A stretch of 64,000 nucleotides of DNA, from NCBI GenBank assembly GCA_003427395.1, contig BFEA01000036.1:2190241-2254240 (forward strand), read 5' to 3'. This document shows, in pieces, positions 8,212 through 61,800 of the stretch. Every line of letters starts with the position of its first letter. Position 1 is the first letter of the stretch. The position numbers and the translations under genes were made by a program. The DNA comes from Chara braunii (taxonomy: Eukaryota; Plantae; Charophyceae). The notes beneath the pieces were generated by a model. The model saw only the letters and a list, made by a program, of their open reading frames with translations. It was not told the DNA's origin and searched no databases.

Positions 8212-8298
8212 TGGGAGAGGCAGGATTTGAACCTACGTAGAAATATAATCTTCAACAGATTTACAGTCTGTCGCTTTTAACCACTCGGCCACTCTCCC
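8212..8298 (-). tRNA. trnY: tRNA-Tyr(GUA), mitochondrial type (NUMT)
   Basis: GGGAGAGTGGCCGAGTGGTTAAAAGCGACAGACTGTAAATCTGTTGAAGATTATATTTCTACGTAGGTTCAAATCCTGCCTCTCCCA; long variable arm, no intron; closely resembles plant mitochondrial trnY from recall; AT-rich context. Confidence 0.9.
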
Positions 8299-8389: not shown

Positions 8390-8391
<2 letters not shown>

Positions 8392-8439
<48 letters not shown>

Positions 8440-21052: not shown

Positions 21053-21235
21053 AGGGGATTCTGCAAGCTGTTGAGGGTTCAGCCTCCCTATGAGTCGGTG
21101 AAACTCCAACGAAACAGTTTGTCACAGCCCCTCGTTTGTTGTCCTCTTCTCCCTCTCTGCTGCCTACGGTTTACCGGGCAGTTCTGTTTGACGATAGATA
21201 TATAAAAAACCCGAGTTGTTGTCGAGGCTGAATTC
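21053..21235 (+). ncRNA. Hammerhead-ribozyme-bearing repeat (pLTR-like), core mutated
   Basis: CCTC-CCTATGA-GTCGGtgaaactCCAAC-GAAA-CAGTTTGTC; same family as the 43494-44490 copies. Confidence 0.65.
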
Positions 21236-24489: not shown

Positions 24490-25947
24490 ATGAACGAAAC
24501 TGACAAGGCTGTGATCTACAGTTGGCAGCGCCTGCGATGTGAGCGGTCGGAGGTACGGATCCGCCCGTGGGTGCCACAGCGATGGCTGGGTCCGGAGAAA
24601 AGGAGAGCACAACTGATGCAGGACTGCTACTGGGTGGAATTTCGTCATATCCCGGTCAAAATTTAAGCGGCCTTCGTGTATGACTTCAGAATGATGTATG
24701 CCATTGTGGCTTTTATCGATCCCCTCCCCTCGTTTGTTGCAAAAAGGGCTGATCACTTAATGCTGGCCCTCGACTTTCCCCCGGGCCAGCCTTTCTCCCT
24801 CGATGATGTGATTCTGTACAGAGTAGGGGGAAAGGAATACATGATCCATACTGCGCATAAGATGTGGCCGTGGTGTCCCAAATGCAGAGCGTACGGACAC
24901 CTCAGCACGGAATTCACCTGCCCGCTGCACCCACAGAAGAGGACCCGAACATCCGGGGGACTATTACGGGATCCGAACAAGGTAACCCACTGGCGTGCTG
25001 TGGACCAGGGACATGAGGGATGGGTATATGTGGAGGACCGAACAAAAGAGGGCGCCCCGAGGGGGTGGGTGTGGGAAAAAACGGGAGCCCAGTACGGAGC
25101 AGAAGGAAGGAAGTTGTGGAAGGAATCCCAGGGGTGTTATGGGCCCCGATGCGAAACAATACGTCCCAGCAAATGTACAAACAGGGGAAAGCAGTTCTCT
25201 AGAACACAGGAACGAGGACGGCGCATACACCTCAAGACAGCCAAGCGAGGAGGCTGTGACAAAGAACACAACACCAGCAGAACCCCTCCCGGTCACTCAC
25301 CAGACAGATCCCCCAGCACCGATAGAACCAGATCAGACCGGAATGCAGAAGAGCACGAAAGAATGGATGGGGAATTGGGGAAACACGGGAAGGAGAGGTC
25401 CGGGCGACAGGAGGAAACTGGGAAGGGATCGTATCGAGACCAGATGGTGGACACCGGCCCTTTCCAAGCCGCCTTTGATCCCGAGCCGATGGACGTAGAC
25501 CCCCTCCCGGACAGCGCCAGTGCATCACCCGAGGGGCTGGCCCCCGGTAGGGAGGAAGAAGCAGGGGAGGAAGGGGCCCCGCCTCAGCACATAGCCGTGG
25601 AACAAAAGCTGGTCGCCATCGCAGACTGGCTCATGAATAGTCTGAAAGCAAAGTATGGCCCCCTCACTGATGAATTTTGGGACAAAACATATTTAGATTT
25701 GTTCCCTATGCTGGATACGAGCATTTCACTTAAATGCGTGCTTGAACAAGGGCTGCAGTCGGGGGTGGGGTGGACGGAAGCATGGCACAGACTAGCCACC
25801 ATAGTTTTCTCACGCTTTCAACCACCCCACCCAGCCACTGACAGCTGGGGGGAGGAGGAAAATGGAACAAAATTTGGAAAAGGAAGATGGAGAAGAAGGG
25901 AAAATACAACCCCCCCCGCCCTCACAGCCGTCCACACCCCCCCCTGA
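24490..25947 (+). pseudogene. LINE ORF1 (gag-like) with CCHC knuckle
   Basis: WVEFRHIP motif followed by CPKCRAYGHLSTEFTC; in-frame stop at ~24666. Confidence 0.75.
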
Positions 25948-26627
25948 CCCTGCGCCCCCGGACCCAGAAGAAAATACACCATTGGACTTGGTACAAAGAA
26001 GGAAACTTAGACATCTAGTCGAGTTAGGTCATGACACGGGGGCCGGGGCCATTGTCACAAACCGCACTGCTCTTGATTCCCGTGCGTAAAAAGGACGGGA
26101 AATGGGAGGTAGGCACGTCCCCAGCCGGGAAGGGCAGGCAAGGTGGCCTCAGGTTACAGGGTCTATCCTCCTTTTGAGCGGACCCGAAGAACTGCCAAAC
26201 ATAAGCAGCAATACGGATCCTACAGATGCATATGGAGACATACATTGCAGACACCCTCCCACGAGGGGTGCAGGCCATGACATCCGTAACATCCGGCTCT
26301 AAAAAATCGCCCTAAGGGACATGTACATCCGCTTTGACCCAGCCAAAGATGCTGGACTGAAGTGGCACACCCACTCCCAACTTTTGGAACTGCAGACAGT
26401 CAAGATCAGGTCCAGTGAGACGTGGACAGAGCAGGACGTCCAAAGATGCCTTAGTGTTATTCTAAGGCTGGGCTTATTGGCGGGTACAACCTGGTGGGAC
26501 TGGGAACAACTGCCGTGGGCCCGTTTAGGGACCTAAAGACAAACATGATTGACAAGATTGATATGGACCCAGTCAAAGCGGTGTACAGAAAGGATCGAAT
26601 CTGGAATCAATGCCAACGAGCAGCAGA

Positions 26628-29600
26628 CTTGGATCTGCGGTCCCTCAACGTCAATGGCCTTGCATCCTGCAAAATGGACAAATAGAACGCAATATGGGAT
26701 CTGATGAGGGGGGTGGGGGGCAGAAATTGGCCAGATGTTGTATGCATCCAAGAAACACACTTAATGGACACCCCAAAACACAACCACATTCATAAAAGGA
26801 TATGGTATTACAAGGCAATCAGGGCATATGCCCCAAGACCTGGGAGCGTCGGGGTAGCCATCTTGATCCCCCCAGAATCCTGGGCGGACCCGGTACTTTG
26901 GGTGGTTGATCAGAAAGGGGGCCAATGGGTGTCAATTTTGGTTACCTGGGAATTGAAGATTGTTTGTATACTGTGCATGTACGCCCCGAAAACTGAGAGG
27001 GAGAGAAGGGTATTTTTCGAGAGCTTGAAAGCACAAATCCTGGTTGGGGTCCCAAGAATTATAGCGGCCGATTGTAACGCAGCCCCCGACTGCTGGATGG
27101 ACAGATGGAAAACACCCTTGCCGGCCCCGTCGTACATAGAGGAGGACGAACGAATAATAGAGGATTTATGCTTCTCACTAACTATTTTTGGAAACTTAAC
27201 CCGGATGCCCGATTTTATTCATGCTCACGTAAAACTGGGACTGACGCCCAATCAAGGTCAATAATAGACCTCATTCTAATTTCGGAGGACATGGGGGGAT
27301 CGCTGCTGCTGGCAGCAATCTTACCCGCTAGCCCGCATCCGGGCCTGGATCATAAAATGTGCACCAGAATTTTCTCGTTCCACAAGAAACTTGATCATAG
27401 GGCTGACTTTTATAAACTTAACATATTCACCTTGCAACAGAAGTCCTTTCAAAACTACATCAAGGACTGTTGGGAGTTTTGGCACACGCAAAAAAAACAC
27501 ATACCGCACGAAACAAACTGGTTCAACAACAGACTACTATGCCTGGGTAAGAAGTGCTGAGAATACTCAAAATTAGTAATGGCTCGGAAAAATCAACAGG
27601 AAATGGAAATCCACAACCGTCTCCAACAACTCGAATGAAAACAAAATCCTGAAAACCTCAGAGTCGAGCATCTCTAAACGATCAGTCCGAATTACAATCC
27701 CTACGACAACAACTTCATATTTTCGCAACGTAACGCTGGGAGGGAACACGTATCAGAGGACGACTGACACGCCATGAAATGGAAGGGTCAATGGACAAAA
27801 AATTCTTCAGCCTGACCCGTGCACGTGCACACAGAACGACGATAGAGGCGCTATATGATCCACAGTCAGGAAGTCAAGAAGTAGCGACCTCCACAACGCA
27901 GTGCATGCAAATCGCAAGATCCTTTTTCAAAGATCTGTTCATTTCAAGATGCACTGGACGGGAGGTGGCCACCATGGAAAAAGAGATAACAAATTTTATA
28001 GAGCCAATGAGGAAGGCACTGTCGGGCCAGCAAAAAGAGCAATTGGACAGACCCTTATCCAAGGAGGAAATCTGGACAGCCCTGATGCAGATGGAAGAGG
28101 AAAACCCCCCGGGTGTGGACGGGTTGCCAAAAAAGTTTTGAGAAACGTTTTGGACATGAATGGGCCCGGACCTCATGGGGTTCTACCATCACGTGTGGGA
28201 AACAGGGCACATGGGGGAGTTGGTAGGGCAGGGGGTCCTCACCTTTCTACAAAAAAAAAACGACATGACGGACATTAAAAACTAACGTTCAATAACTTCG
28301 CTCACAATTATCTACAAAATGCTAGCAAAGGCCTTGGCAAACCGCCTGATTCCGGTTTTGGAAGACATTATTCACCCGACACAGGCTGGGTTTGTCAAGG
28401 GTCGTAGGATCCACGATAATATTTTGCTGGTCAATGAGATCCTCAAGCTAACAAGGCAAGACAAACACAACGCTGCTGTGGTCTTCATCAACTTCGAGAA
28501 AGCATATGACCACGTGGACTGGATGTTCTTAGATAGGTGCATGCAGAAAATGAATACTGGGTCAACCTTTCAACGCTTGACTGAGATTCTACACCACAAC
28601 GCTACGACGAGTATCCAGGTCAATGGACTGATGACACCAGTAATCTCGCTGCAACTGTCGGTCCGCCAAGGAGACCCCTTGGCTCCCTTTCTATTCATCA
28701 TTGTGATGGAGGCATTGGCAGCGAACCTCCGCACTAACAAAGACCTTAAAAAATTACAGATCTCCGCCATCCCTGAGGAGGCGATCCCCATATGTTTGAT
28801 GTTCGCGGATGATTTGATGGTTATGGTGGACGCCACCCCCGAGAACATGGAAGAGATTAAGCAATTGTTCGATCGATTTACGACAGTCTCAAACATGAAT
28901 ATCAACCGGGGGAATAAAACACTTGGACGGTGGATCCATCACCAAGGAATGCGCCCGCTGAAATAGTCGTGGGTCAAATGGCTACCGAAAAACGCCTCGG
29001 TCAGAGTATTGGGCATAATGCTGACAACATTGGGGAAGTCGGCATCGAACGACAAATGGATTCTCAAACGAGCACTGGAAAAATTGACACGCTGAACTGA
29101 CAAACACACATCTTTGGTTGGTAGAGCACTGACAATCAACAACGCGGTTCTAGCAACCCTCTGGTATAGGTCTGTGCTTACGTAGCATCGCGTTCGGGCT
29201 CGGTGACTGAACCCAAACGCTCGGTACCGAACCCGAACATGGACCAAATTCGACCGAGCCCGAACATTTTTATTTCTTTTATTGTTTTTTTTTTTTTTTA
29301 ACATAAATAGGGGTTGGGGGACCTCTAGGGGCGTTGCTCATCACTCTTGAACATATACACACACATACACACACACACACCACACACGAACACATACACA
29401 CCCACACACACCCCATACACCACACACACACGAGGACGCGTTCGGTAGCCCCCTGATTTGTGCTCAGCCGAACACATTCGGTTCCCACTCGACCGAGCAT
29501 CCGAACATGTTCCGCTGCTCGGTGGGGCGCCGAACATGTTCGTTGTGCTTTGGGCCCTAAACAAAGGAACGGTTAGATCAAATCACCGCCTTGCTGTGGA

Positions 29601-31458
29601 GAGGCAACAGTGAGCTTCCAAATGTCGTAAGTAGGGTGGCTTGGTCATCGTTGATTCAACCCAAGGACAAAGGGGGTTTGGGCATCCTAGACCCAAATAC
29701 ATAGGTGGCTTCGCTGATGGTACAATGAATCAGAAGACAGGTATTTACGACAGACCTTCCCTGGTATACCCTTTCTCTATAAAAAATTGCTAGACTGGCA
29801 CCACAAGCACCACGAGGTGTGGATCCCCTGACCTGGCTAGAGGACCGATACTGGCCCATACCATGGCACCCTCAGGTCGACAAGGACTCCACTCGGGGAA
29901 CAGCGAGGAGTGACCTGGCCAAAGATGACTTCTAGCCCCGGGTACTGAAGGCCTGGCGCCAACAACCGTTGCTAGAAAAAAACACGCCGAACAGATGGGA
30001 AGAGGTGACGACGCAACCCCAGCAACAGAAATATCACTGATAGAAATGACAGGGTACACCGTAGTTCGGACCCCCCATGGAGCAGCTGGGTCAGAAACGA
30101 GACAGTGAGGATCAAAGACATATGGGTCCCAACGCGAACAAACTGGAAAACGGCGCCACAATTGAGGGTTCAGATGAGGTACTGTCATGATATTGAAAGG
30201 AACCTAGAAACACTAATCTTTGACATCCCTGTTGGCTGGGTGCGCACTCTTCGAAAAGGACCGCGGTCGCAGTCCCGGACGACACGGAAAGCGTGAGCAA
30301 TGTGGTGGAAGTGCGGGCAGGCGAATCCTTGGTCAACCTCTTCCATAAGGAAAAGGGCAGTATTCTCACCAGGTACACTCCGGACGCAGTGAGGTGGTGG
30401 AAGAACGAGGAGTTGCACAGAACCCGTGGACTGAGACACAAACACGAATGGATCGCATTCCGCCCCGGAACATTCCTTGCTGAACTCCCCTTCGACCCGG
30501 ATGAGTGACACTGGGTGCCCGCACGAAGAACACCAACCAATCCAAACATAAATTTCTTTAGCTTGTCAGTGAAGGCCACTTACCGGCTGCTGCGGCCAAA
30601 GGTGAACCTTAAGGAGATGGTAAAAGCCTGCTGGATAGCCCACCTGAACATAAGTCAGGGGACCGTCCACCCTATCTGGTGGTTTTCAACCATGAGATCC
30701 AATCCGGCCAAATTCGCCTCGCTGCAGTGGCAGATAGAGCATCGTTGCCTCCCGGCAAATAATTGGTTGATAGACCGCACGTTCCTGGAGCAGAAGGGCC
30801 TGGCGCTCCCCTACTGCAAATCTTGCCATAACGCCTTCCCCTCCTGTAAGATCTCAGAAACTATAGAACACATCTTCCTATAGTGCCCAGGGGCGGTTCT
30901 CACTTGGCATTGGTGGGATAGGATACGGAGCCTCCTGGGCACCGGATCGACTTGGCCGTGGGACTGATGGCGCTGCTCTGTGAAGAATGGACCTCCCCCC
31001 AAGACAGCGATTTTGAAAACAACATGTTCAAGATCGGGAGGAGAGCGGTTATTCGGGCACTTTGGAGGAAGCGCTGCACATACTCCATTGAGGGAGTTAG
31101 CATGGAAGGAGAAGAAGTAACGGAAATAATAAAACAGTATATACAGCAAGAGCTCCTCTCACAATGGCAGAAGGCCAAAAACCAATTACAAACATATCAC
31201 TCAAAGAAAGACATCACACAAACAATCAATCAATTCTCAGGGGACTGGCTAGGTAGCGAGAAAGAAGGCTGGATTGCCTATATCCGATGGGAGGGTGGAC
31301 AGTCTCCCGGGCAGGAGCAGGTGGACTTCAGGAGAGACTGCTGCATCTGCTTCAAGGGGGACCAAGGAGTGCCGATGCGCTCACCCACAGAGTTCCCGGA
31401 CCCGTTCCCTCCCCATCAACTGTCGTTGGTGGATATGCAATGGTATGGTGCAGAATAA
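26628..31458 (+). pseudogene. LINE ORF2 (APE endonuclease - RT - zinc finger), disrupted
   Basis: LRSLNVNGL, CIQETH, MYAP, ADCN, IDLILIS, LDH; PGVDG, YKMLAKALANRL, QAGFVKGR, FEKAYDHVDW, RQGDPLAPFLF, FADD; PKDKGGLGI; CKSC..ETIEHIFL*C. Confidence 0.92.
29180..29542. mobile_element. MITE inserted in LINE ORF2
   Basis: Flanked by CTGTGCTT / TTGTGCTT; CCGAA/TTCGG subterminal repeats; removal restores LWYRSVLW; TIRs imperfect. Confidence 0.65.
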
Positions 31459-31848
31459 GCAAAGCTTGGAGTTCTGTAATGCAGATTGAAGAGCCTTTGG
31501 AGAGTTTAGGGCTTAGATTGAAAAGAGGGTTTTAGTGAAACCAACAGAAATCAACTGTCGCAGCTTGCTCTAGAGGCACATGTAATAACTGACAGCCATA
31601 CAGCTGAGAGAAGTGACCAGTGACGGATTAGGCACACAAATCCATACAAAAGACTAGCTACGACAGGCTAACTTAGGCAGGGGTGAGGGGTGGTACATCC
31701 TTCCTACTGGAAGTAATCAATGCCGTCCAATCGAGCCTCTCAACCATAATGGGGAGGAGCGTGGGGTGAGTCAACCTTGTACTATTCATTGACTTGCCGG
31801 GGGAATAGAAACCGGACTGTCACTCCCCAGAATGGCATGAGCCAGAAC

Positions 31849-31885
<37 letters not shown>

Positions 31886-32117: not shown

Positions 32118-32185
32118 TGGGAATTCCACAGGGTGTCGAAGGTTCAGTCTTCTGATGAGTTGGTGCAGCAACTGCCAGCAAGCCA
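32118..32185 (+). repeat. Degenerate copy of the hammerhead-bearing repeat
   Basis: GGGAATTCCACAGGGTGTCGAAGGTTCAGTCTTCTGATGAGTTGGTG aligns with GGGGATTCTGCAGACTGTTGAGGGTTCAGCCTCCTGATGAGTCGGTG. Confidence 0.6.
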
Positions 32186-32841
32186 TCATCATTAGTTTTC
32201 GTTTTTTTGGGTCTTTTGATGTTTTCTGGTACTCGTGCTTTTTGCCTTTTCCCTTGTTGCCTTGTCCTGTTTGTCTGCTCACCATGCCCTCCAGCCTGTG
32301 TGCCTTGCTTTCGTCCTGTCCGTTGGCCATGGTCTTTGTCTCTTTTTTTTTTGTAGTTATATTTTTTTGCCCTTTCCGTTGTTGGCATGACCTGCTGCCC
32401 ACACGCCTCCGCCATGCCCTTCAGCGAGCCTGTGTGCCTTGCTGTGGCTTGTTGTTCAAGGCCTCGCTGCCTACCTACCCTTTGCTTTACTGTCTTCTGC
32501 TTCACTTGCCCGTGGGATTTGATGTTTTCCCTACTCACGTAAGGTCCCATGCGAGCAGCCTATGCATGTCCTGAATTGGTGTGGCGATGTTTGGGCTCGG
32601 CAACCTTCCTCTCCATCGTACTTTCTATCCTGATAAGTGCCGAAAACTTGGAGCATGGTGGTGCGGTGTTCATACCATGACATGCATACAGTTACTATTG
32701 CACAATACACACATATCAGTGATGATATCACACACACCCGCACACACACAGATTATGCAACCTCGTGCTGGGCCAGTGAAAAACCGACGAAACAGTCTGG
32801 CACAATCACGCTTTCTCATTGGAGATATGTACAGCAAGCAC

Positions 32842-32904
<63 letters not shown>

Positions 32905-33393
32905 ACATCGGGCGGTTGAACGGTGACAGGGACAGGAGCACGACCTCAGGCTGAGCAGACGAGGCGGGCTCTGTAATAAGTGCGGTGTTCTCTTTCTCTC
33001 GCCTTTGTTGTTTTTCCTTTTTCCTTTTTCCGATTCTTCTTGTTTTGTCCTCCTTTTTCTTCTTCCCTTTTTCTTTTTTCCTTTTTTCTTTTCTTTTTTT
33101 GTCTTTTCTCTTTTCTTTTTTCTTTTTTCTTCTTTTCTTCTTTTCTTTTCTTCTTCCCCCCCCCTGTTTTTACCCCCCTGATACGCACATGCACGCCCCT
33201 CCCTGCAGTATGTCCCTTACTGCTTCGTCGGCCCTCCACCACCACCTCCCCACCCACCCCACCCCTATTTTTTCCTTACTTTGAATAAGGCTCGCCTCTG
33301 GTCACCCCTTCCGAAGAACGTGATTAGGCACACACCCCACACATGGATAGGACCGAGGCCCTTCCCATGAAGATGACCGCCCCCCCGACGGCN

Positions 33394-34678
33394 TGTAAGA
33401 ATAGTGCAGATACATAGGGAACCGGGGGATGTCGCGCACTCAGAACAGGGCCGGTTCGTGAGCCAGGCCATGGGCCGATTGTAGCCTAGTTTGCTTGATG
33501 GTTTTGCATTTTCTCCTTTTTATTTTTATTTTTCCTATTCTTTTTTCTTCTTTCTTCTTTTTTTCTTTTTTCTTTTTTCTGTTCGTTTTTTGCTAAGTAG
33601 GTACTCTGGAATAAACGGATGGATGTGTGAGGAGGCTTGCATTGGAAGGCCACGATCTCCGATGGAGGAGCAACTATATTAGGACCAGACGTAGGTAAGA
33701 CTGTTCATAGGTCCGGGCGCGGTGCGTTCTGGTTTTGCGGGTTCTTGGGTGAGGCGGCGCACGGCATGGACTTCTTCGACGACTGGGACCAGGTGGAGGA
33801 GCAGCCGGAGGCGGAAGACGCGGTAACGATCCTGGCGTGAGGACTCTCTCGTCAATTTCCTGCTGCCCCGACCGGACCTCGACCACGCACCATGCAAGCG
33901 GACGCGACCTGCCTTGCGCAACCTGCCCTGCTCCCTCCGGGCTCAATCACGCCAACGCTGGGCGCAGGCCTGGCCCTCCTCTTCCTCCTCACCTTACTCC
34001 CCAACCTCGCCATTGCCTGCATGCTCACGGCCGCTNTGTAAGAATAGTGCAGATACATAGGGAACCGGGGGATGTCGCGCACTCAGAACAGGGCCGGTTC
34101 GTGAGCCAGGCCATGGGCCGATTGTAGCCTAGTTTGCTTGATGGTTTTGCATTTTCTCCTTTTTATTTTTATTTTTCCTATTCTTTTTTCTTCTTTCTTC
34201 TTTTTTTCTTTTTTCTTTTTTCTGTTCGTTTTTTGCTAAGTAGGTACTCTGGAATAAACGGATGGATGTGTGAGGAGGCTTGCATTGGAAGGCCACGATC
34301 TCCGATGGAGGAGCAACTATATTAGGACCAGACGTAGGTAAGACTGTTCATAGGTCCGGGCGCGGTGCGTTCTGGTTTTGCGGGTTCTTGGGTGAGGCGG
34401 CGCACGGCATGGACTTCTTCGACGACTGGGACCAGGTGGAGGAGCAGCCGGAGGCGGAAGACGCGGTAACGATCCTGGCGTGAGGACTCTCTCGTCAATT
34501 TCCTGCTGCCCCGACCGGACCTCGACCACGCACCATGCAAGCGGACGCGACCTGCCTTGCGCAACCTGCCCTGCTCCCTCCGGGCTCAATCACGCCAACG
34601 CTGGGCGCAGGCCTGGCCCTCCTCTTCCTCCTCACCTTACTCCCCAACCTCGCCATTGCCTGCATGCTCACGGCCGCT
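33394..34678. repeat. Apparently identical 643-bp tandem duplication, probably an assembly artefact
   Basis: 33394-34035 matches 34037-34678 with identical ORF translations; single N at both junctions. Confidence 0.85.
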
Positions 34679-40268: not shown

Positions 40269-42896
40269 CTATAATGACCATACCACAACGTATACATTCT
40301 ATTCGCGGAAGATGGTAGCGGATCCATCAAGCTACCCTGGATCTTAACCCACCAATACACCCCAGCCTTTCGGGACCCTCAAAAGTTTGCCCAACCCTGG
40401 ACTACCGAACCCTCACAGGGCCAACCAAGTGCCACAGTATTTCTTTTGCTCTGGTATGTCGGACCTTGTTGTAGCGCACTGTTAACCGGTGTCAGTTCGT
40501 GTCCAGATGGAAAATCATATGTGCAAGCCCACACCATGTGGAAAATTGCGCACGTACGGCATGCCGGCAAAAGGGGTCGCACGGGTGAAATAGGCACCCT
40601 TAGTGGGAGAGCGATTTCGCTACCTAATGGGTCAAGACTGATGTCCCAGACGCCTATTTGAGGCTATTTCTCGTGCCCGATTGGACAAAAAGAAACATCT
40701 GCTCGTCTGCACTCAAAAAGGATCTGTTCCTTGTGATTTTTTTGACTTCGGATTTTTTCGAAGACACAGAGTCTGAAGACTCTGAATAGTGTTTATTAAA
40801 CTTTATTTTCTTTAGCCTTAACAAGTCAAAGGCCAGCTGTGGGGGCAGAGGAGGAGCCTTAACAAGTCAAAGGCCCCACCATGGCGGGTGCATCAGGTAG
40901 GAAGAGGCAATGTGGGACATAACCTATAGGGAGAGAGGGAAAGCACTCAGCAGTGGGGGCAGAGGAGGAGTACACCATCCAGGACATACGACAACATCAT
41001 GAAGATGGTGTCTATGACCTTATTTGGCATAAACGCGGTGCTTGGCACCACTCTCTCCGCCTCTCTGCTCTCACAAAACACAATGAAAGAGCACACAGTG
41101 GTGCCACTAGGTGGTCCTATGTGGGCTAGGTGATGCTATGCGGCGTGGGTGCTATGGCCGACTGGGTGCTCTGGCTGCGGGGTACTGTGGGCCCTAGTCC
41201 CTTCATTCCAATACACCTTGGGAGATGGCACAAAACTGCAACACTGCCGAGCATGCGAGCTGTTCCACTACATCGACACAAGACGGGATGCGATGAGACA
41301 AAACAAAACGAAACCAGAAATAATTTTCAAATAAAATCAATAAGCGCTCGCTCACACTGTTGTATTCTATAGAGTTCATCACAATTCGAGCTCGTGGCCT
41401 GTTCCTTGACAGTAAACCAAGAGGGACAAAATAAAAACCGATAAACAGAAGAAAAAAAAAAAGGCGACCAGGCTGCAACCCTAATGTTATTGCATTTCGC
41501 CTTGCTCCACTACACAATGCTATCTGGACTGCATGTTGATCTGCATACATTCAGGCTGTCACAATTTCAGCTTTTTTTTTTTCTTTTTCTTTTTCCTTTT
41601 CCGGGTTTCCCCCTAAAACTACACTATTCTTCTCTCAAATTCTTGCATCTTTCACGACCTACCTACCACTACTCCTAAGGCTATACAGGGGACCCCTGCA
41701 AGCATAGCTATCTACCTCTCTTGGTGAAGGGAGGTTAGCTCTCTCGGTGGAGGGCGGTAATTGCATGTTTGCCCCTTGCCCTGGTGGTCTAGGGTGCAGG
41801 GTTGGGGCTGCCGGTAGGGGCTAGGCTAACACAAGGACCGAACATTTGCCAGTAGCTGCGCCTCCCTTTTCATCTTCCCCCACTCCCATCGAGTAACAGC
41901 AGTGTCTGAGGCCAACACTCTCCGACACACCACATGCAGCTCGCTCACACTCACACTCACACTCACACTCACACACGTGTTGGCTGAAGACCCTACTAAT
42001 ACCGACCGGGAGGATCCGGCTAACTATCTCAGTTGGATGGCACCAAGCATACAGCAGGGGGCTATGGGGATTGAAGTTCATTGCACCCACGACCTCCCGA
42101 ACGCCACTTGCTGCTTGCGTGCCTAACCAATCGAGCTAGGCCGCTCGATACAATTTCAGCTCGGAAACAGCACAAATAGAAACGAACTTCCGAGAGCCCA
42201 AAAAAAAAAAAAAAAAAAAACACGATGACCTCTTCTGATTCCATTACAACTCAAGCCCCATGCTTTCGCACCTCAGCGTTAGCTGATTACTAACAGTTAC
42301 ATGATTGCTGCTTGCTGGCATGGGCCAGCCATGTACTTGCATTCGAACGACCCTTGGACAGCCCCTCACACCCTCCTCTTCCAGGGGCCATTTTTACCTT
42401 CGAGTACTACATCACATGGCCTCTTGGTGACAGGGTTTCGGCCAGAAATCACTGTGTATACCTAGTTGACCTTCAGAACATCGAGATCATAAGCATGTTG
42501 GTTTCCTTCTCCCATTTACAGATGCAATCGTAACCTCCTCCTCCCTCACCTCCCAATGTTGTGGAAGGTTGTATACACCTGAGTGCTTTCCCTCTCTCCC
42601 TATAGGTTATGTCCCACATTGCCTGTTCAAGAGAGCAGAATGCAATCTATTGTTCCATACTGGACCTAATTTTCTGTAGAATGGCAATCGTAACCCCCAA
42701 TTTTCTGGACCTAATGGACGTCCAAGAGAGCAGAATGCAATCTATTGTTCCATAGTACTGATTCTATCATTCTGTAGAATCGATGGATATCGAACAAATC
42801 AGTATCAACTACTGAATACCATATCTTTACCCTTCACAATCCAGAACTGGGTTGAGAAAGTTCAAAAATCCATTCATGCAAAAAGCCATACCCTTT

Positions 42897-43125: not shown

Positions 43126-46100
43126 CTGCAGCAAACATGCACAGTATTAAAGACCTTAGTTGTTAGTGCTTGTTACTAAATCAGATTTACAAGCCAGGAT
43201 TCACATACGCAGAGGAAGGCGAAAAATGTATAGTGCAGGTGCTTTATTGAAGCGTACTAAGCTTGACCGTACATAATACAGACTACATTGTACATAACAT
43301 ATTGTCACATAGCAATGAACTAAAAGAGCGCACTTTGCGAAACAAACGGTAAAAAAAAGAAAAGAAAAAAGACCAACATGGGGGCACACTGAAACCATTC
43401 AGTTGTCTCATTCTTATATATATATTATATTATATTATATATCGTATATATATTATATATATCGTCACAATATATATTATATTATATTATATACCTCCTG
43501 ATGAGTCGGTGAAACTCCGACGAAACAGTTTGTCACAGCCCCTCGTTTGTTGTCCTCTTCTCCCTCTCTGCCTACGGTTTACCGGGCAGTTCTATTTGAC
43601 GATATATTATATATATCTTCACAATATATATTATAATAATTATATCTATATATTATATCTTATATTATATATATCGTCAGATAGAACTGCCCGGTAAACC
43701 GTAGGCAGAGAGGGAGAAGAGGACAACAAACGAGGGGCTGTGACAAACTGTTTCGTCGGAGTTTCACCGACTCATCAGGAGGCTGAACCCTCAACAGTCT
43801 GCAGAATCCCCTCNTATCACTCACCCACACCAGATGGAAAACTCTACAGACTGTCGGTTCACACCCCATCACAAGCCAGCAAAACATCCACGAAACAAAG
43901 AAAGGTCTGTCACAGCCAAAAAATACACTCCAGACACGCCGCTGGCACTATAGCCAAACAGAACTGGCCGGTAAACCATAGGCAGAGAGGGAGAAGAGGA
44001 CAACAAATGAGGGGCTGTGAAAAACTGTTTCGTCGGGAGGCTGAACCCTGTGTCGTCAAACAGATCCCAACTTGTGCCCGGATACACGCCAGGGTGCCCA
44101 GCCGGGCATGACCCCAGGCAACGATCTGGGCAGCCCCTGTGCACAAAAAAAAAAATAAAAAAAAAAAAATCCAGAAAAAAAGAATGTTCTCATTGTTCTG
44201 TAGAATTGCATTTCCAACAACTAGCCCGGATTTTGATCTCGGTATGCGCAGAAAACCCCCACGGCAACTTTTATTTCCCCCACCCCCCGGCGCCGGGGTA
44301 CCCCGGGCAACACGCCCAGGTGGTCGGCCGGGCCAGCCCAGCCGCGCGTGACAATCTTCCTTATAGTAAATATCATCGTAAAGAACTGCCTAGCGAACGG
44401 TAGACAGAGATGGAGAAGAGGACAACAAACGAGGGGCTGTGACAGACTGTTTCATCGGAGTTTTAAGGGACTCATCAGGAGGCTCAAACCTGTATAGCTG
44501 TAAACTAAATGTGTAACCGTAGTAGCGATTTGTCAAGATAGACCCAAAATCTCAGGCCTGTTAGTCCATGCCTGGTAAAGTCAACAGTCGGGGCCAGAAT
44601 GGGAAGGAAAGCCAATGGTCAAACCCTTTGCCCAGGCAAACCTGAACCATCAAACACACTACATAAACGCCCGGCCACCATGATTTGCTTGTTGATGCAT
44701 GCAGACCCAGCTGCCATCAGTTGTAGCCTCAAGCTGCAGTTTCCAGCATTGATCAAAGCGGTGCCATCGTTCAGGCCAGTGTCCTGGCATGTCGGAATAA
44801 TGTAGATCCTGGTGCTGTCATACTCACGCTAGTACTTCTCCGACTGAATCTGTCTGACAGAGAAGACATATATCCTGGAAAGAGCAGGTGTGAGAACGGC
44901 TCAGTGCGCCCTCATCCATTCGCTTTGTGGCTGAAGTGCTGGAAAATTAGACTACCAGAGCAAGAGAGCATCAATTACCCAGCAGAAACAGCAAGGATGA
45001 TGATGATGGGGAAGCACCATAGCTACCACAGCAGTGGCTACGTGCATGGCATCGGGGTAGAAGCGACAATTGATAACTCAGAACTGGTGTGAGGAGGAGC
45101 CTAAACTTAGGTGGAGGTGGAGAGTCCGGCAGTCATAGCGTCCATGCTGCTGTGATCACAATTCGGCTATATTGGGTGGCGCTGGCCCTTACTAACTCAT
45201 CAGGCTCACAATCTGTCGTCCTCATAGAGCTCCCGACACGTGAATTGTCCCTCTTCAATTTTTGAATTATTTTTCATTTTTCTGCTTGAAGAGGAGGGGA
45301 ACCAATCACAGTAGGAAGAGAACCACTGGAGAGACTTAGGGATTGATGTCGACCACGAATTTGCTTGGCCGCTTGCTCTTGGGCAAAATGCTGATTGTAC
45401 GGTGAAACCTTGACTCACCTTCCACCTTAAACCACCAGTACATCCGAGCCTCCTTTTGCCGAGGAGGGTTCCCCCTGCGCGCCACGCTTTGCTGAAACAC
45501 CACCGTGGCGTGTTTTGTTTTCAAGCGCCACGCTTTGCTTAAACCACCAGTACATCCGAGCCTCTTTTGGCTAGCGCCGCCAGCCATTTTGGTCTGGCAG
45601 CATTGTTTTATCCAAACTTTTCGAAATGACTTTTTTTTTTTTTTTTAATTCGACAATCTGCGGAGCACCGGTTTTGGATGTTTTGGGTCATGAACCCTTT
45701 GACCCTTGTTGAAGGCAGATTGCCCACAAGCGGAACACAGCAGCGAGCAGCACCCGTGTGAAGCACCAGGGAACACACCCGAAGCCACTCAACCGCACAA
45801 CACCAAAGACGACTGCAAGGAACAACACGTCAAACAGCGGACGGCAGCAAGAAACAACCCTGCGAAGCACCAGGCAACGCACCAGAAGTCACTCAACTGC
45901 AGAACGACACAGACGGCTGCAAGGAACAACACCGCAAGTGGAGGCACAGCACAGCGCTCGTGTAATGAAGCACAAGGCAACAACCACACGACCACCACAC
46001 TACACGACACACAAGCAAGGAACCCAAAAGGCACGGCACATTTAACAGCACACAACGAACAGCACGTGACCCAAGCGGGATAGGCAGCAAGGCAACGGTG

Positions 46101-49100: not shown

Positions 49101-51708
49101 CATTCCGCTCAACACCCACCCAAACTATGTGCAGTTAGAATTAAAGCTGCAGGCGGTCTCTTTCGAGTTAGGCAGGTACTACGGGTAAGTGGTATAAATT
49201 AGGTTTGTTAAAGTGTCCAGAATCCAGATTCATTCAACTTGGTAAATTGGAAGCGTAACCAGTATATTGAAATACAGTGAATGTATGTGATCATGCCTTT
49301 CGTCATGAATTTCTACAAAGGAATAGAGTTCTCAGTCCTGCTTCAGTGCTTCAACCACCACCATGTTACCTAGGTGCAAAGGTAAATGGAACACACTAAC
49401 ATCTTTCGAATACCACAAACCCATGCACACCTTCATCGCTCTGTGATGTGGTGGCATACGAGCCGCGTGGAATGGACTTCTTCGATCATATACTCTGCTG
49501 CCTCAGGGGTCCAAGAGAAGGAATCCCGTTCTCACCTCATCATCTTCTGGGTCAAGCCACCACATAGGACGGCAAATTGGCGCCAAAGCCCGACACGCAT
49601 CATCTGCCAACATTAATAGATGGTTCTGAATTAGACGTCGAACCTACAGCATGTCACCACAGCAACGCACATGAACAACATTATGATTTAGTATGGGCAG
49701 TCCATGGCCAACCACATTGGCCGCGCGCATTTGCGATATTGTTGATACGGAGCTAACCACCACAGCAACAACCTCGCTACGGAATGTAAGACAAGGATGA
49801 GAGAGGCGGGATGGTACCAACCTGCAGAGCTGAATGGCACAACTTCTCGGCTTCCGCGCTAAAATCCCATGGTGGAATTGAGAACTGCATCCCAGCCCAA
49901 CAGGTAACACAACCGAAAACCAGTGAGTGCCTTCTTCTTCTTCTTTGTTTTTTTCTTTTTTTTTTCCCCAAAAAATTGGACCATTTCTCGATTTATGCAT
50001 GTCATCCTTGCACAGGGGCCATGCTAATCTTCTCTGTATCATTCCAATTTTAACAGATGTTCTGAAGGACACCTTCTTCTTCTTCTTCGTTTTCTTCTTT
50101 CTTCTTCTTCTTCTTCTTCTTCTTCTTCTTCATTTCGATTATTCGGACTATTACTCGATTTATGCATGTCATTCTTGCGCAGGGCCCCTGCCCTTTAACG
50201 GATGTCCTGAATAACATTCCTTCTTCTTCTTTTTCTTCTTCTTCCTCCATTCTCCTTCCTTCCTTCCCCTTCCCCTCCCCCTCCCCTTTCTCCTTCTTCT
50301 TCTTTTTCTTCCATCCTCTTCTTCTGCCATCACGTTCTGCAGCAGAGATTTTTCTTGAGCATTCTCATACCGAAAGCGGCGAAAAGAAAACCAGGACTTC
50401 TACACTCCTCCATTGTCAACTTCCTCCTCTTCTTCCTCTCCTTCCGCTTGGTGTTCTACATCCCCTTTTTCCATCAGGATGTTTAGCATTATTTCACTCA
50501 TGACATGTAGTGTTGATTTCCATCGAGTTACAACACTGCCACTGCGTCTCCTACATCCTCCTCGATCTTTTCTTCCATTTTCATCTTTTCATGCTCTGCT
50601 CCATGTCGCACATCAGGGAGCCAGGTTAAAACCGTTCCTCCTCATGCAGTAAAGAAAACCAGGCTAAAAGGGTCTTCTGAACGTCGCCGAGAAAGGAAAC
50701 CAAGTCAACCATTGCCAGCCTGGGTACTGTTCCCCGCACAGAACAGCCCACGCGATATGCTGAGGCGAAAAATCAGGAGGCCAGGAATCCAACCCATAAC
50801 CCCAGCGTCCCCTGCTAAGCTCGTAGTATACAGGTAGGTAGTGGGAGGCATATTGAGAGAAGAATACAGGTTAGCTTTAAAAAAAAAGAAAAGAAGTCGA
50901 CCCTTGCCAGATTCTAACCATCTGCAAGGGATGACAGCTGAAGGCAGAGCCTCACCAGCATTAATGAAAACAACAGCGGTGAAGAAGCTCGGAGACCCAC
51001 CACAAGTGCAGGGGTAACTTCGCAGCGTGGGAAAATGCACTGCATCTTCAGAAGAGAATGAATCTGAGAATGTGAGATCAATTAGCTGTGGTGCGTCTGG
51101 GAGTTTGAAACCATGGAAACAGAGAACGGATGGAGAGGGCATGCAAAAATATCTAGAAAAGGGAAGTCACTCGGAATTTAAAATCAACATACCTGCATGG
51201 CTGGCATCAAAGCATTTGCTTGCGCCCATCTTACCAGTAGCTCCATGTCTGTGCAGAGTGCAGTCGTCCATAAACAGTAGGCAATGATCACAAATGAGCA
51301 ACATAGAAAGGCCGGCAAAACAGTACCCAAATTCTACAGCAGCTCTCACAGACATCTTACTATCCTCTTCCTCACTTCGTCATCATTACTCCCTGCCTTC
51401 ATCGTGATCCCCAACCACAAACCCTCCCACACTTCCTCTTCTTCTTCTTCTCCTCCTCCTCCTCCTCCTGATCATCCTTACATAAACTATGCAAGTCGGT
51501 ACTTAATCCAACAACTCCATCATCATCCTTCCTCCTCCTCCTCATTATCAATTTATTGCCCTACCGGTAATTCACATCACCACAAGCACTGCCACCACTA
51601 CACCACCATCACGATCACTGCCAGCACCACGCTCGCCACCCTCCCCTGCCGCGTCCTACCACCATCACGATCAGTGTGAGCATCAATACAGGCATCAACC
51701 TACCAGCG

Positions 51709-51744: not shown

Positions 51745-53499
51745 ACGACCGCCGCCCCCCCCCCCCCCCTTTGTTCTTCTCCTTCTTCTCATGCTTTTCC
51801 ATCATAGGTTTCGAGTTCAACAGTAGCAGCCTTTACATGACAAGGTACCACTATCATCCTCGTTATTCATCACCACATGCCCCTTTCCCTATCCATTTCC
51901 CTCCTGCTCATCCACCACCATTAGCGCTGCCACCACCGCACTGCCTTATCATCAATATCTTCACCATCTCACAACTGCCACTCCCACCACAACCACTGCC
52001 TTATCATCAATATCTTCACCATCTCACAACTGCCACTCCCACCACAACCACCACCACTACCGCTATCATCCATGTCATCAGCATAATTGTTGTCAGTATT
52101 GTCACTCCATCATCATGATTCTTATCATCATCAGCCACAGAAGTATTGTCCTGTTACCATCATCCTCATCCTAATCGCATCACCATCATCATCATCCTCA
52201 TTGCATCATGGCCGTCATCATCACCGTCATCCTCACCACCCTGGCCATCAATCTCACCTAATCCTTAACACCAAGACCACCACTAGCGCAAGGATCAGCA
52301 GTGGCAGCACCGGCAGCACCACCACCACTAGTATCATCATAAGTAGCGGCAGCTCATCACCATCACCATTCCCCTGTCAACATCGTTCCCATCCCCACTA
52401 TCCTCACGGCCCTTCGTCATCATCATTATCTTTATCATTGTAGTTCCCATTTTTCATGTCCATACCCTCAGCAGTGCCAAGCCAATCATCACGATGTCCT
52501 AACTGTCCGCCTCTTCTAACCCTTCGTCATCACCACTATTAGCCTGAGTCATCACGATAGACGCACAACCACCACAACGACCACCCCCACCTCCAGCAGC
52601 ACCATCACCCCCACCACTATCAAAGAACAGCCATTTATGTTCTTTTATTCTCTTCGTCTTTCCATTCTTCCTATTCCACGTCTTGAGACATAGATCTGAA
52701 GTTTCTGAACTTCATCACCCACGTAAACACCCCCTTCTCCCTCCCCCACCCACGTAAACACCCCCTTCTCCCTCCCCCACCCACGTAAACACCCCCTTCT
52801 CCCTCCCCCACCCACGTAAACACCCCCTTCTCCCTCCCCCACCCACGTAAACACCCCCTTCTCCCTCCCCCACCCACGTAAACACCCCCTTCTCCCTCCC
52901 CCACCCACGTAAACACCCCCTTCTCCCTCCCCCACCCCCCCCCTCCCCCCCCCGAAGGCATGCTCACACTCAACCATTGATTCCCTGTGCACTTTCTGGT
53001 GGTTCTCGCCATGCAGAACAAAAGTAGATTAGTTTAAACTTTCACAATAGCTCCAATGCCGCATTCCAACAGGAAACCACGATGAAAATCCAACACCTAA
53101 GCAGTGTACAGACTACAATACCTGGTTTGCTTCCAAAGTACGCATTCCCTCCAATCATATCGGGAAGGCAGAATGGGTAGCCAAGCAGCCCAGATGTAAG
53201 TAGCGTTGGGATAACACTCCGCAAACCATTCCCCGAGCCCCAGTGCGAAAACCTGGGACCAAACACAACTCGAGCAACAAAACAGTGCATAAACCTGTCG
53301 TCAGAAATGAACTGCAAGTGCTGTCAAATATTTCGCAAGATTTCCCAAAAACGCTCTTAAGAGTCTTAACATAATTCTTCTTTTATTTTTTTTTGAAAAA
53401 AAGGCATTCTTGTTACATCAAAACTCAGACAGTCAACTGTGTTTTCCACTCTTTCGAAAAGAGAGCGTCATGTGAAAAGGATAAATGCATTCTGAGCCT

Positions 53500-55265: not shown

Positions 55266-58029
55266 TTGCTAACAGAAAGGCCTTGAAGCCCTCATGGAAT
55301 CAGCTTCCGTGAGAAAAAATAAGACAAAATAACTTTACAGTAAGACATAGGAATGATAGGATACTTTTTTTCCCCCCCACACCTTTTTTCTTCTATAAGG
55401 GCAACAATCTGGACTCTCGAGATATCGTCTTCCAAGTTCGAACTGACCGGCCCCAGGCAAAGTCAGATTTGTTTTCAGTCGTCTGATTCCATAGGAATTC
55501 AAGCTCTTGCGCCTCATCACCAAAGGGCCTGGCTCAGTTGGTACACCCATAAACTGTTGAAACTTGAGTTACAGACCTAAGTTCAAATCCAGATGCAGTC
55601 AATCAGATTAACAGAATAAAACAAGTCTGAATTACCTGGGGCCAGTCAGTCCAGTGATGATATCTCCGGACCGTCTCCCTCGAAGGGAAAAAACAGAAAA
55701 GAACTAGGCTACCAGCCGGGCCGCCCCGGTCCCCGGTGGCCAGCCCGTGCAAGGACCAGGGAAGGCCCCAGCAAAAAAAAAAAAAATAAAAAAAAAAAAA
55801 AATAAAAAAAAATCCCAAAACAAACTATGTTATGCAGAAAAAAACTGAACAACTTTTGCCTCAGGGTCACATCGAAATTCTTCACCAAATTTAGAATAAA
55901 AAATAAAATTAAAAATATTTATTTTATTTTTATTATTTCATTTGTTTTTGGCCCGGCCGGGCAAGTGACCCCGGGCCACTCTGGTAGCCTAGGAAAAGAA
56001 TCAAAAGATTCTTCAAAAAAAAAAAAAAAAGATTTCGAGAGTGGCACGTGACCACTTGCCCGGCCAGGCTAAATACGAAATACAAAAATAAAAAATAGAA
56101 AATAAAAAAATATATATTTTAAATTTGGTAGTAATTGGTACGCAATTTCGATGTGACCCTGAGGCAAAAGTTGTTCAGTTTATTTTTCTGCACAACATAG
56201 TTTGTTTTCGGATGTTTTGGATTTTGTTTTTCTTTTTTTTGCTGGCACCTTCCATGGTCCTTGCACAACCGGGCCACCCGGGAAAATAGGGTAACCCGGG
56301 CAGCCCGGCTGGTAGCCTAGCTCAGGCCTGTATTTCAACAGTACATGGGTGTAAGTTTGTGTAACAACTGAACAACTGTCTTCACCCGAATAGAACGCCC
56401 GGTCATTATCACTGCATCTGGACTTAAAGTTGGGCCAAATGCAGCTATAATGACCAGGCGTTCTATTTGGATGAAGACGGTGGGCCATCATGGAAAGATT
56501 TCCTCCATAATTGCTGGTCAGGACTCACAAGTATGGAAGGCTAGGATAAATGCCCTGTTGTCCTAAGACTCTGGAAAGTTAAATGTAGAGAGGTATTCAT
56601 AGCTAGAACCGTGGAAGCGTCAGCAAACGACTCAGCATGCATGTGAAAAGTGGAGGACATTTGGTTGCATCTCTCGGTCTTCTCGTGCATGTAGAGGAGG
56701 AGAGGCCGTTGGCTGGACAGCAAACCGAGTCAATAAAGATATACAGTACCGACCTGGACCCAGAGTCGTGTATATTCAATCGGTGATATGATAGGTGTAT
56801 GAGTGCGAAAGCGGCGAGGGAGGAAGCAAGGCTCTCCCGCATCAAACTTGAACCCATCGATCAAATTTTCCTCCTGCAGTTTCTTCAGCCGTGTCACAAA
56901 CCTGCAATCGCAGAGAGCGACAAGTTCGAAAAACAAGCAGTACACAAAGACGGAGATTGAACATAGGATGATAGGATAGATCTCAAAAAAATTGGTGCAC
57001 AGGAGGGACTTCGTACTTCGTACGTTCCGAGGTGGTTCCAGCACATAGACAGATTACGAGGCTCGTATTCGAACCTCGGGATCCAAGCGGGTTTCGTAAG
57101 ACAAAGTTACTTTCAATCGCAGGCCAAATAACTCGTGGAGTTTCACATAATGCAACTTTTTTCACGTAACTGTTTTGTTTCTGTCTAGCAAGATTGATTC
57201 TGTGATGCAGAATCCGAAGAGTGGAGATCAAGGCCAGTGACCTTTCAATGCTGGTCCTGGCCAAGCAGTACACAAAGACAGAGATTGAACATAGGATATG
57301 ATAGGATAGATCTCTAAAAATTGGCGTTCTACAGTGTGCATAAGAACACACAATACTTAGGAATGTATGTTCTTACTTAGCAATGTTGTTAATAAAGGAC
57401 AAGATGCGAAGCTTTCAGTAGGAGCATGCCCACACATTCCTTTTTAAATATTCTATTTATTTTACAATTTGGACCATTTCTCGATTTATGCGTGTCATCG
57501 TTGCGCAGGGGTCATGCTAATCTTCTCTATATCGTTCCAATTTTAACGGATGTCCCGAAGGACATGACCTCACATTCCTAATCAATGAAATTTAGCACTT
57601 GGGCTTCACCATTTTTTTCCGTCCTAGATAAGAACCAGTCACAAGGCCTCTCAGGTCTAACGCTCGGCGAAGATCACTGTAAGTCCAGTCGGACTACGGT
57701 GGTCTAGGCCGACGGGAGTGGGGAAGTGGATTAGTCAGCGTCGGTGGACTTGAGTTGGTGGACAGTAGGGGGAACCCCCTGAAGATGATGGCGTGGCTGC
57801 CATCGAAATGCGGTGTCGAGGACGCCAGTACCTCTGTTTTTCAGCTACATGATAATTTTGTCACACCTTCTGGACTTGTACTCTTTTGTCTTGTACTCTC
57901 CATTTGACCTTGTTTGGTTCTTTCCTAATCTAATCTCCTAATCTGGACAGCATTCAAAGAATGATGAAAGAAGCTCTTGCACCAAGACAGTTTATTCATG
58001 AGATAACCTACTCCTTTTTCTTTTTATTA

Positions 58030-59138: not shown

Positions 59139-60176
59139 TAATAATAATAATAATAAATTTACTACTTCACTATGCCAATCTTAGATAAGAAGTATTAAGA
59201 AACCGTCACAACGCTTTTTTCGGGATATTCATTCAAGGAGACGATGAAATAACCTAATCGATTGGATTGATTCCTTGCACGGGGGCCAGGCTAATCTTTT
59301 CTGTATCGTTCCAAATTTAAAAGAATTGAGCAATGTTTTACAATACCATTTTCTTCAGGCTTAGATGAGAACCAGTCACTAGGGCACGTCATTATTTCAA
59401 AGCATGATGAAAGAAGCTTTCGCAACATGACATGATTTTCAGGAGATAACCTCAGATCAGACCAAAGTTATAAAAGAGATGATGATTGGAGGTATTGGAC
59501 AAGATTTGGTACCAGAGTAGGGAAAAACCCTCCCGAAGGCAACAGAGTTCAACAAGTTATCTTTTCATCTGCAGCCAAGTTCTGTAAACAGCATAATTTT
59601 TCCATATCCTACTTCTACCACCAGCTATGGTGGTCATCTACTACTCCGAGCTATGGCTGCCTGACCAACGCTCATTTCCCTCCCTGGCAGCAGCACAGCA
59701 GTATGGCACACTACAAACTAGCACTGAGTGTCCCGCAGGGCAGAAAATGTCACGACTGAACTGGCACCACACTGGGACATAGGACCCCCTTGGCTGGAAG
59801 GCCGCTTCATCCGTTAAGCGCTTAGGCTCGTACGAAAACTTTATCTGGACTGTCAGATGCGCTTGCAATTTCTGGCCAAAGGAGACAGAGGGGGAAGCAG
59901 GGGGAGGGGTGTGCCGCCTTTCAGGCAGACGTGGCAAACAAGAGCATCACAGATGGTTACTACACGGCACAGAAGAAGCAATGATGGAAAATGTCCGAAG
60001 ACAAAGCAGCTCAGAGAACTCACCATTTGACAGCATCCGGGTTTGTGACATCAAGCGCCACAGCAGGAGTGGGCTGCCACCTGTCACAGAAATGACAACC
60101 AATCAGTCAGATTTGCTAAGAACATCCTAACAAGTCATCGGAGGGTTTAATGAAGACTGAGATTGAGGGGGGGAGG

Positions 60177-60227: not shown

Positions 60228-60352
60228 NNNNNNNNNNNNNNNNNNNNNNNNNNNNNNNNNNNNNNNNNNNNNNNNNNNNNNNNNNNNNNNNNNNNNNNNN
60301 NNNNNNNNNNNNNNNNNNNNNNNNNNNNNNNNNNNNNNNNNNNNNNNNNNNN

Positions 60353-61200: not shown

Positions 61201-61769
61201 TATACAGCCCTCCCCTCTCCCCTCCTATTGCTCTGCACTCAATGCTTTAAAAGGCTGAGAGTCTGAGATGCGTCCTTGCATGCATGTGCCATGTCAAGCT
61301 TTGATTGCCTTGGGTCATATTTAGTACTTACAATCTAGGCTGGGTCGTCCCCCGGCCAGGTATAGCCAGGCCAGCTGGGCCGGGGGGGGGATAGCCCGGC
61401 AAAACCAGGCAGGTCAAAAAAGAGGGAAGGATCCCCCCCAAAAAAGAAACTGACTTCAGGCCAGGACTGCGCTCAGCCTGAGCAGTCAGAATCCGGCCTT
61501 ACCTTCCATTTTGGTGGTGGGTCACCCAGGGGTGTTTTGGGGGGTATAAAGTTACTCTAACAGTGACTAGAGGGGTTTAAAAGGGTATATCTTACCTCAT
61601 TTCTCCTCATGTATTTTATCTTAAAATAAGGAATTTCCAGGGGACCCTCAGCCAAAAGATGCTTGTACTGCAATTTTACACAACATGTTTTTTATAACTT
61701 TTCTCCTAGGCTACCAGCCAGGCCGCCCGAGTCCCGGTGGCCAGCCTGTGCAAGGACCAGGGAAGGTCC

Positions 61770-61800
<31 letters not shown>

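Follow-up and report, generated by a model that had tools for sequence, protein, structure and literature searches.

Which type of hammerhead ribozyme is carried by a family of short repeats in the charophyte Chara braunii, and what kind of element are these repeats? The question is raised by a cluster of copies between positions 43414 and 44499 of a stretch of 64,000 nucleotides (nt) from contig BFEA01000036.1 (assembly GCA_003427395.1, forward-strand positions 2,190,241 to 2,254,240). This whole stretch is referred to as the window, and all positions are given within it. A preliminary description made from the letters alone had proposed an atypical hammerhead with a helix inserted at stem I. 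According to covariance models and folding, the motif in the best-preserved copy, copy A, is a canonical type III three-way-junction hammerhead and not a new four-way variant. The family is best explained as a Penelope/Chlamys-type non-autonomous retroposon, eight copies of which have piled up in the window; the element would be short and non-coding, roughly 145-190 nt long, with the hammerhead near its 5' end. We regard this explanation, taken as a whole, as probable. The copies are referred to by letter (A to D) or by their start position, and the coordinates of the features are collected in Table 1.

The Rfam model RF00008 (Hammerhead_3) spans its full length on copy A with 45.8 bits (E = 1.2e-09 for the local stretch and 7.8e-07 for the whole window). 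The invariant core of copy A is complete, with C3-A9 (CUGAUGA), G12-A14, A15.1-U16.1 and a U (not G) at H17. Both the minimum free energy (MFE) structure and the centroid of RNAs of 60, 88 and 146 nt are a three-way junction in which stems I and II are capped by loops and stem III is open (z about -2.7 to -2.9). In stem III, eight of nine pairs reach probabilities of 0.98-1.0; the terminal G-U pair reaches 0.68. Within this 9-base-pair (bp) helix, the partner of the upstream CUGU is the first ACAG, which immediately follows GAA. UUCA in loop 1 is complementary to UGAA in loop 2, as read off the sequence, with a chance of about 5% by rough estimate that this is an accident; a contact between the two loops is possible. 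The ribozyme is predicted to cut after GUU, freeing a 21-nt 5' piece. Because the modelled stem III is a stable 9-bp helix and stem I is closed, copy A should act as a monomer.

The different register proposed in the preliminary description is available because ACAG occurs twice. There, the GUC at 43744-43742 was taken as the cut site, and this choice forces a stem III of 3 bp and a hairpin between stem I and C3. The complementarities listed in its favour (ACAG/CTGT, CCCCTC/GAGGGG and the hairpin GAGG-GTTCAG-CCTC) all exist in 43813-43725(-). The hairpin, however, is itself stem I of the type III fold and not an insertion into a four-way stem I. Pairing of CUGU with the second ACAG has a probability of 0.00 and is about 12 kcal/mol costlier; explicit energy evaluation gave -30.6 kcal/mol for the type III fold and -18.8 kcal/mol for the four-way model. 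The minimal, near-palindromic stem III likewise has an ensemble probability of 0.00, and the modelled stem III is the 9-bp helix. In the type III register, the predicted cut falls not after C43742 but after U17 (Table 1). Assignment to type I fails as well, as the bases before C3 form a closed hairpin, and pairing of the flanks instead would demand a 15-nt insertion at about 12 kcal/mol and with zero probability. When the members of the Rfam hammerhead clan were compared, as had been suggested, the best was the type III model RF00008, matched end to end. Among natural hammerheads, we know of none that has an additional helix between stem I and C3. The novelty of a four-way-junction hammerhead falls away; the motif is a standard type III ribozyme that had been read in the wrong register.

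The window contains eight copies of the hammerhead-bearing repeat. The six listed previously (21053, 32118, 43494, A, B and C) were all recovered by blastn and nhmmer, and two, copy D and relative 32757, are newly found. The window has three matches to the pattern CTGATGA-N(8-30)-GAAAC (43498+, 43778- and 44478-), where 0.32 are expected, and none of 100 shuffles reaches this number. The 5-bp stem II GTCGG/CCGAC is intact in two of these three matches, in agreement with what had been noted before. Only copy A keeps every invariant core nucleotide together with all three stems; the other seven copies are dead. The invariant core fails in 21053 (CCUAUGA), in B (by deletion) and in 32118 (no GAAA). 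Copy 43494 has lost everything 5' of CCUC and with it both the cut site and the strands that form the 5' sides of stems I and III. Copy 21053, despite its mutated core, aligns identically to RF00008 (21065-21120, 26.7 bits), and the relic at 32119-32167(+) gives a local match to the same model of 13.2 bits (E = 2). Copy D gave no match in the Rfam search; its local alignment score is 52, against 17.5 +/- 2.9 for shuffled sequences (maximum 29). A single N stands at 43814, adjoining the 5' end of copy A, and runs of N lie within (GA)n microsatellites at 18474-18495 and 60228-60352; all of these are assembly gaps at repeats. Copy B adjoins a member (44068-44190(-)) of another short repeat family, unrelated to the first, that has a poly(A)/poly(T) run. 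At least four copies of that family, 68-83% identical, lie in the window, the others being at 62249-62374, 61696-61809 and 55707-55812. Outside the window, a degenerate pattern for core and stem II, scanned once against metagenome sequences, matched five unrelated type III hammerheads and no family members, and two scans of viral contigs with family-specific strings gave no matches.

Table 1. Positions of the repeat copies, of the ribozyme parts in copy A and of the adjoining tails and microsatellites in the window
Feature	Position	Strand	Description	Evidence
Type III hammerhead, copy A	43745..43800	-	Rfam RF00008, model 1-54/54	Rfam, MFE and centroid fold
Stem III, copy A	43802-43794 with 43751-43743	-	9 bp, GCAGACUGU paired with ACAGUUUGU	
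U17 (H17), copy A	43793	-	Predicted cut GUU/G between 43793 and 43792	
Stem I hairpin, copy A	43792-43779	-	GAGG-GUUCAG-CCUC; 4 bp, 6-nt loop	
Core CUGAUGA, copy A	43778-43772	-		
Stem II hairpin, copy A	43771-43755	-	GUCGG-UGAAACU-CCGAC; 5 bp, 7-nt loop	
Core GAAA, copy A	43754-43751	-		
CCCCUC, copy A	43732..43737	-	Pairs with GAGGGG (43813-43808); 6-bp outer extension of stem III over an internal loop, not stem I	Fold
Copy A	43669..43813	-	Sole complete hammerhead; from GAGGGG (43813) to tail TGACGATATA (43679-43670), then (TA)n	blastn, nhmmer, fold
Copy 43494	43494..43607	+	5'-truncated; begins at CCTC (3' strand of stem I)	blastn, alignment, inverted-repeat search
Copy D	43842..43917	+	Heavily decayed, head-to-head with copy A; GUC at the type III cut-site position	Local alignment
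Copy B	43948..44068	-	Deletion of 19-20 nt takes out CUGAUGA and the 5' half of stem II	blastn, nhmmer, alignment
Copy C	44360..44499	-	Core letters retained; stems I and II and the 5' side of stem III broken	Pattern search, blastn, alignment
Copy 21053	21053..21202	+	Dispersed, 93% identical to copy A; core mutated to CCUAUGA; ends in TGACGATAGATATATA	blastn
Relic 32118	32119..32167	+	Keeps the 5' part (stem I, CUGAUGA, GUC at the type III site); lacks GAAA and the 3' strand of stem III	blastn, local alignment
Relative 32757	32757..32809	+	5'-truncated, different subfamily, diverged; (CA)n on either side	blastn, nhmmer, local alignment
3' hairpin (CUGCC..GGCAG)	43687..43708	-	Just upstream of the tail; conserved in A, 21053, 43494 and B	Fold, alignment
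(TA)n-type microsatellite	43414..43493	.	Flanks copy 43494; tail-only fragment TGACGATATA at 43458-43467(-)	TRF, pattern search
(TA)n-rich spacer	43602..43674	.	Between two 3' tails; further tail-like fragment at 43612-43621(-)	TRF, pattern search

Covariation was examined for both architectures on the six copies that can be aligned, which are few and decayed. Under the type III model, 73.7% of the cells are paired, a value reached by 225 of 500 shuffles, and the compatible changes are one-sided only. In three stem III pairs, one partner changes and pairing is kept: copy 21053 has G-U for A-U and A-U for G-U, and position 15.6 has G-C or G-U. For the stem I register of the preliminary description, no pair varies compatibly. 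GUC sits exactly at the type III cut site in the two most diverged relatives (32118 and D), and GUU is found there in A and 21053. CpG transitions account for 17-20% of the substitutions versus 10.5% of the sites, which is suggestive at most of CpG decay as the source of the difference between GUU and GUC. Conservation of the core does not exceed that of the element's 3' part, which fits neutral decay of inserted copies. The preliminary description had itself listed missing stem I covariation and a core no better conserved than its flanks among the outcomes that would speak against it; both were found, the former for its own stem I register.

The copies share a unit of about 145 nt that extends from about GAGGGG, or from 20-25 nt further upstream in some copies, to a (TA)n tail. 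From 5' to 3', it consists of the ribozyme, a conserved pyrimidine-rich stretch, the 3' hairpin, the motif TGACGATA and (TA)n; the order of these parts and their flanks are directly observed. A pattern search found the tail motif TGACGATA seven times in the window against 1.6 expected, with four of these in the TA tract of the locus, tail-only fragments included. The mutual homology of five copies (A, 21053, 32118, B and D) fades 21-45 nt upstream of the cut site, where their flanks align weakly. All six copies that reach the 5' part retain the sequence upstream of the cut site, that is, the 5' strand of stem III.

Copy 43494 is bordered by (TA)n on both sides. Copies A and 43494 are arranged tail-to-tail, with arms of 122 nt that are 97% complementary (43494-43615 and 43661-43782) around a TA spacer of 45 nt, and copies A and D are arranged head-to-head. 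The near-perfect RNA hairpin formed by 43494-43615 and 43661-43782 matches several plant microRNA (miRNA)-precursor models, all far under the gathering score (for MIR7533, 129 versus 230 bits). It is possible that the inverted repeat of A and 43494 is a source of hairpin small interfering RNA. TRF found no array with a period of 100-500 in 43300-44700. Among 145 stop-to-stop open reading frames (ORFs) of at least 100 amino acids across the window, there is no GIY-YIG domain, no second reverse transcriptase (RT) and no Penelope-type ORF. As no RT or GIY-YIG ORF lies on the copies, they are non-autonomous or represent only the tail of an element. The general idea of the preliminary description, a ribozyme-bearing, non-coding and non-autonomous retroelement family whose copies have mostly decayed, is upheld.

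The traits of Penelope-like elements of the Chlamys/Naiad type are found in the family: insertion into microsatellites ((TA)n, and (CA)n at 32757-32809), 5' truncation and inverted pairs (A/43494 and A/D). Such elements have been described as targeting (CA)n and (TA)n and as being 5'-truncated and arranged in inverted orientation (PMC8557442). From the TGACGATA(TA)n ends, the microsatellite sites, the 5' truncation and the inverted neighbours, we infer target-primed reverse transcription into microsatellites. In such a scheme, an element transcript or a read-through transcript would be made first. The ribozyme would fold co-transcriptionally and cut after U17, releasing the element RNA from longer transcripts, a role already suggested for the ribozymes of Penelope-like elements and retrozymes. 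The 3' (UA)n tail would then anneal to a nicked (TA)n target, and a Penelope-type RT supplied in trans would carry out target-primed reverse transcription, often truncating the 5' end. Since none of the copies begins at G1.1, and the 5' strand of stem III is present in six of them, the productive templates would have been uncut, religated or circular RNA. The 15 bp that hold the 5' fragment in place would favour religation. Cleavage, the mobilising enzyme and the role of the ribozyme in this scheme are inferred.

Several observations weigh against this explanation or its parts. The RF00008 score of copy A is 2.7 bits under the gathering score of 48.5, the triplet at the cut site is GUU instead of the usual GUC, and stem I has just 4 pairs. 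The six-copy covariation does not separate the type III from the four-way architecture, and neither beats the shuffles. A read-through transcript would bury the ribozyme of copy A in a hairpin of about 290 nt with the inverted copy (-251 kcal/mol). The predicted cut site (G1.1) is the start of no copy, and a role of the ribozyme in setting the ends of the copies is not visible at the locus. The 145-ORF scan also leaves the window without an autonomous Penelope-like element.

The copies could alternatively be the 3' tails of a strongly 5'-truncated, autonomous hammerhead-bearing Penelope-like element, such as Chlamys-2_cBra, rather than a separate short element. Copy 43494 is clearly 5'-truncated, and Chlamys-2_cBra has a canonical 3' hammerhead ribozyme (3'-HHR), very high copy numbers and frequent 5' truncation (PMC8557442), all of which fits this alternative. 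However, A, 21053, 32118, B and D all lose their homology to one another within about 21-45 nt above the cut site, a pattern that speaks for a discrete 5' end rather than for random truncation. Upstream of none of the copies is there an ORF with a Penelope-type RT or a GIY-YIG domain, and the sole RT of the window belongs to an unrelated L1-like long interspersed nuclear element (LINE) with its own poly(A). We consider truncated tails unlikely. Far less probable is that the copies are fragments or solo long terminal repeats (LTRs) of a plant-type LTR retrozyme, an element with a type III hammerhead in LTRs of 300-400 bp that is mobilised by Ty3-gypsy elements. The host belongs to the plant lineage, the ribozyme is of type III, and plant retrozymes carry type III hammerheads (PMC4918200), but the homologous unit is only about 145 nt long and ends in (TA)n, and 5'-truncated, inverted copies in microsatellites are the behaviour of non-LTR elements. 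No direct repeats of LTR size (300-400 bp) flank any copy, the sole direct repeats at the locus being 102-nt copies spaced 277 and 422 nt apart, and no tRNA-Met primer-binding site is found near any copy (two matches with two mismatches in the window, at 51202 and 59507, are fewer than expected by chance). The type I hammerhead of the preliminary description, cutting after GUC (43742) with a near-palindromic stem III and a four-way stem I and possibly acting as a dimer, is the least credible alternative of all: GUC is the preferred triplet, the GUC-ACAG segment is kept in most copies and the paired cells are similar in number (76.6% versus 73.7%), but its fold is disfavoured in energy and ensemble, the best model is of type III, stem I shows no covariation and the perfect 9-bp helix is left unexplained.

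The proposed Penelope/Chlamys-type retroposon with a type III hammerhead can be set beside the known ribozyme-bearing systems. In the literature, type III hammerheads go with plant LTR retrozymes, elements equipped with LTRs, a primer-binding site, a polypurine tract and target duplications of 4 bp; type I hammerheads are placed in the pseudo-LTRs (pLTRs) of Penelope-like elements and in tandem animal non-LTR retrozymes (PMC4918200, PMC4209133, 10.64898/2026.07.22.740005). With the RF00008 hammerheads of plant retrozymes, viroids and satellite RNAs, copy A has in common the core (CUGAUGA, GAAA, A15.1-U16.1 and H17), closed stems I and II and an open stem III; its stem II and loop 2 are near the family consensus, and the whole model is aligned. 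It differs from them in having GUU, as does 21053, in place of GUC, in a stem I of 4 bp with a G-G mismatch, in an unusually long stem III (9 bp plus the 6-bp extension) and in its genomic carrier, which is not an LTR element. The minimal type I hammerheads of Penelope-like pLTRs (Cervera and de la Pena 2014, PMC4209133) also lie in the terminus of a retroelement, but they have a stem III of 1-2 bp with a palindromic loop and act as dimers, whereas in copy A stem III is a stable helix of 9 bp and stem I is closed. The metazoan non-LTR retrozymes (Cervera and de la Pena 2020, PMC7229834; Li et al. 2026 preprint) are likewise short and non-coding and are thought to be non-autonomous derivatives of Penelope-like elements; theirs are type I ribozymes in head-to-tail arrays, whereas the Chara family has a type III ribozyme and is dispersed or inverted, not tandem.

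There is also a likeness to elements of the same host. Canonical hammerheads have been reported from two lineages of Chara braunii, Chlamys-2_cBra (with its 3' HHR) and PLE-X (Craig et al. 2021, PMC8557442). Shared features are a canonical hammerhead close to one end of the element, a very high number of copies, the targeting of microsatellites, truncated 5' ends and inverted neighbours, while the copies in the window have no ORF and a unit of less than 200 nt; the likeness is one of published descriptions, not of sequences or of ribozyme type. The family is most simply a non-autonomous derivative of the hammerhead-bearing Chlamys lineage already published, or its truncated tail.

The window is eukaryotic nuclear DNA and contains a number of other features. 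A cluster of U6 small nuclear RNA sequences comprises two intact genes (98 and 91.5 bits), one marginal match (47.4 bits) and one fragment (49970-50070(-), 57463-57563(-), 59239-59343(-) and 50137-50192(-)); we take the U6 sequence to resemble that of plants. A tRNA-Tyr (GTA) gene at 8211-8298(-) adjoins a long poly(T) run (8390-8440) and, with 88 nt, is about 15 nt longer than a standard tRNA; the extra length is probably an intron. About 480 nt downstream of it on the same strand, a match to group II intron domain V/VI (7653-7730(-), 37.9 bits versus a gathering score of 40) may be an organelle-derived fragment. The L1-like LINE, at about 24667-31885(+), has a weak zinc-knuckle ORF, an APE domain (26704-27264), RVT_1 (28319-28966) and poly(A) at about 31850-31885, with several broken frames. 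The best named relatives of its RT are land-plant L1 elements at 34-38% identity, and the closest relative is P0056 (79%). This RT at 28.3 kb was considered as a partner of the repeat family and rejected as unrelated, given its APE and RVT_1 domains and its poly(A) upstream of the relic at 32119. Helitron remains include Helitron_like_N in two ORFs (13961-14671(+) among the sites, best E = 4.8e-23) and a PIF1-like helicase ORF (1.3e-14). Exon-like matches to Sec62 and to the C-terminal domain of glycosyl hydrolase 31 are also present. Exact look-up of seven window ORFs in a protein collection found none of them.

Further repeats are found elsewhere in the window. At 52685-52968, within strongly C-rich DNA with a GC skew, a unit of 31 nt (CACCCACGTAAACACCCCCTTCTCCCTCCCC) is perfectly repeated about nine times in tandem. 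A direct duplication of at least 300 nt (33393-33692 and 34036-34335, 643 nt apart) is 100% identical and represents either a recent tandem duplication or an assembly artefact. The 50-nt inverted repeat at 40901-40950 and 42579-42628 is 98% complementary; its arms, 1.6 kb apart, may be the terminal inverted repeats of a DNA transposon. An 86-nt hairpin at 40181-40266 matches MIR2593 with 53.6 bits versus a gathering score of 96.

Hammerhead-bearing Chlamys elements of Chara braunii have been known since their publication in 2021, and the locus adds one apparently intact ribozyme among dead copies. The family fits neither of the established classes fully, as it has a type III ribozyme on a short non-LTR element of Penelope-type behaviour in the charophyte lineage. 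The presence of a type III ribozyme on an element that behaves like a Penelope-type retroposon bears on the origin of the type III ribozymes of plants and viroids. That the family is a still-active retrozyme of a streptophyte alga, combining a viroid- or plant-style type III hammerhead with Penelope-type, microsatellite-primed non-LTR mobilisation, seems to us doubtful; if true, it would connect the ribozymes of Penelope-like elements with those of type III in land-plant retrozymes and viroid-like RNAs.

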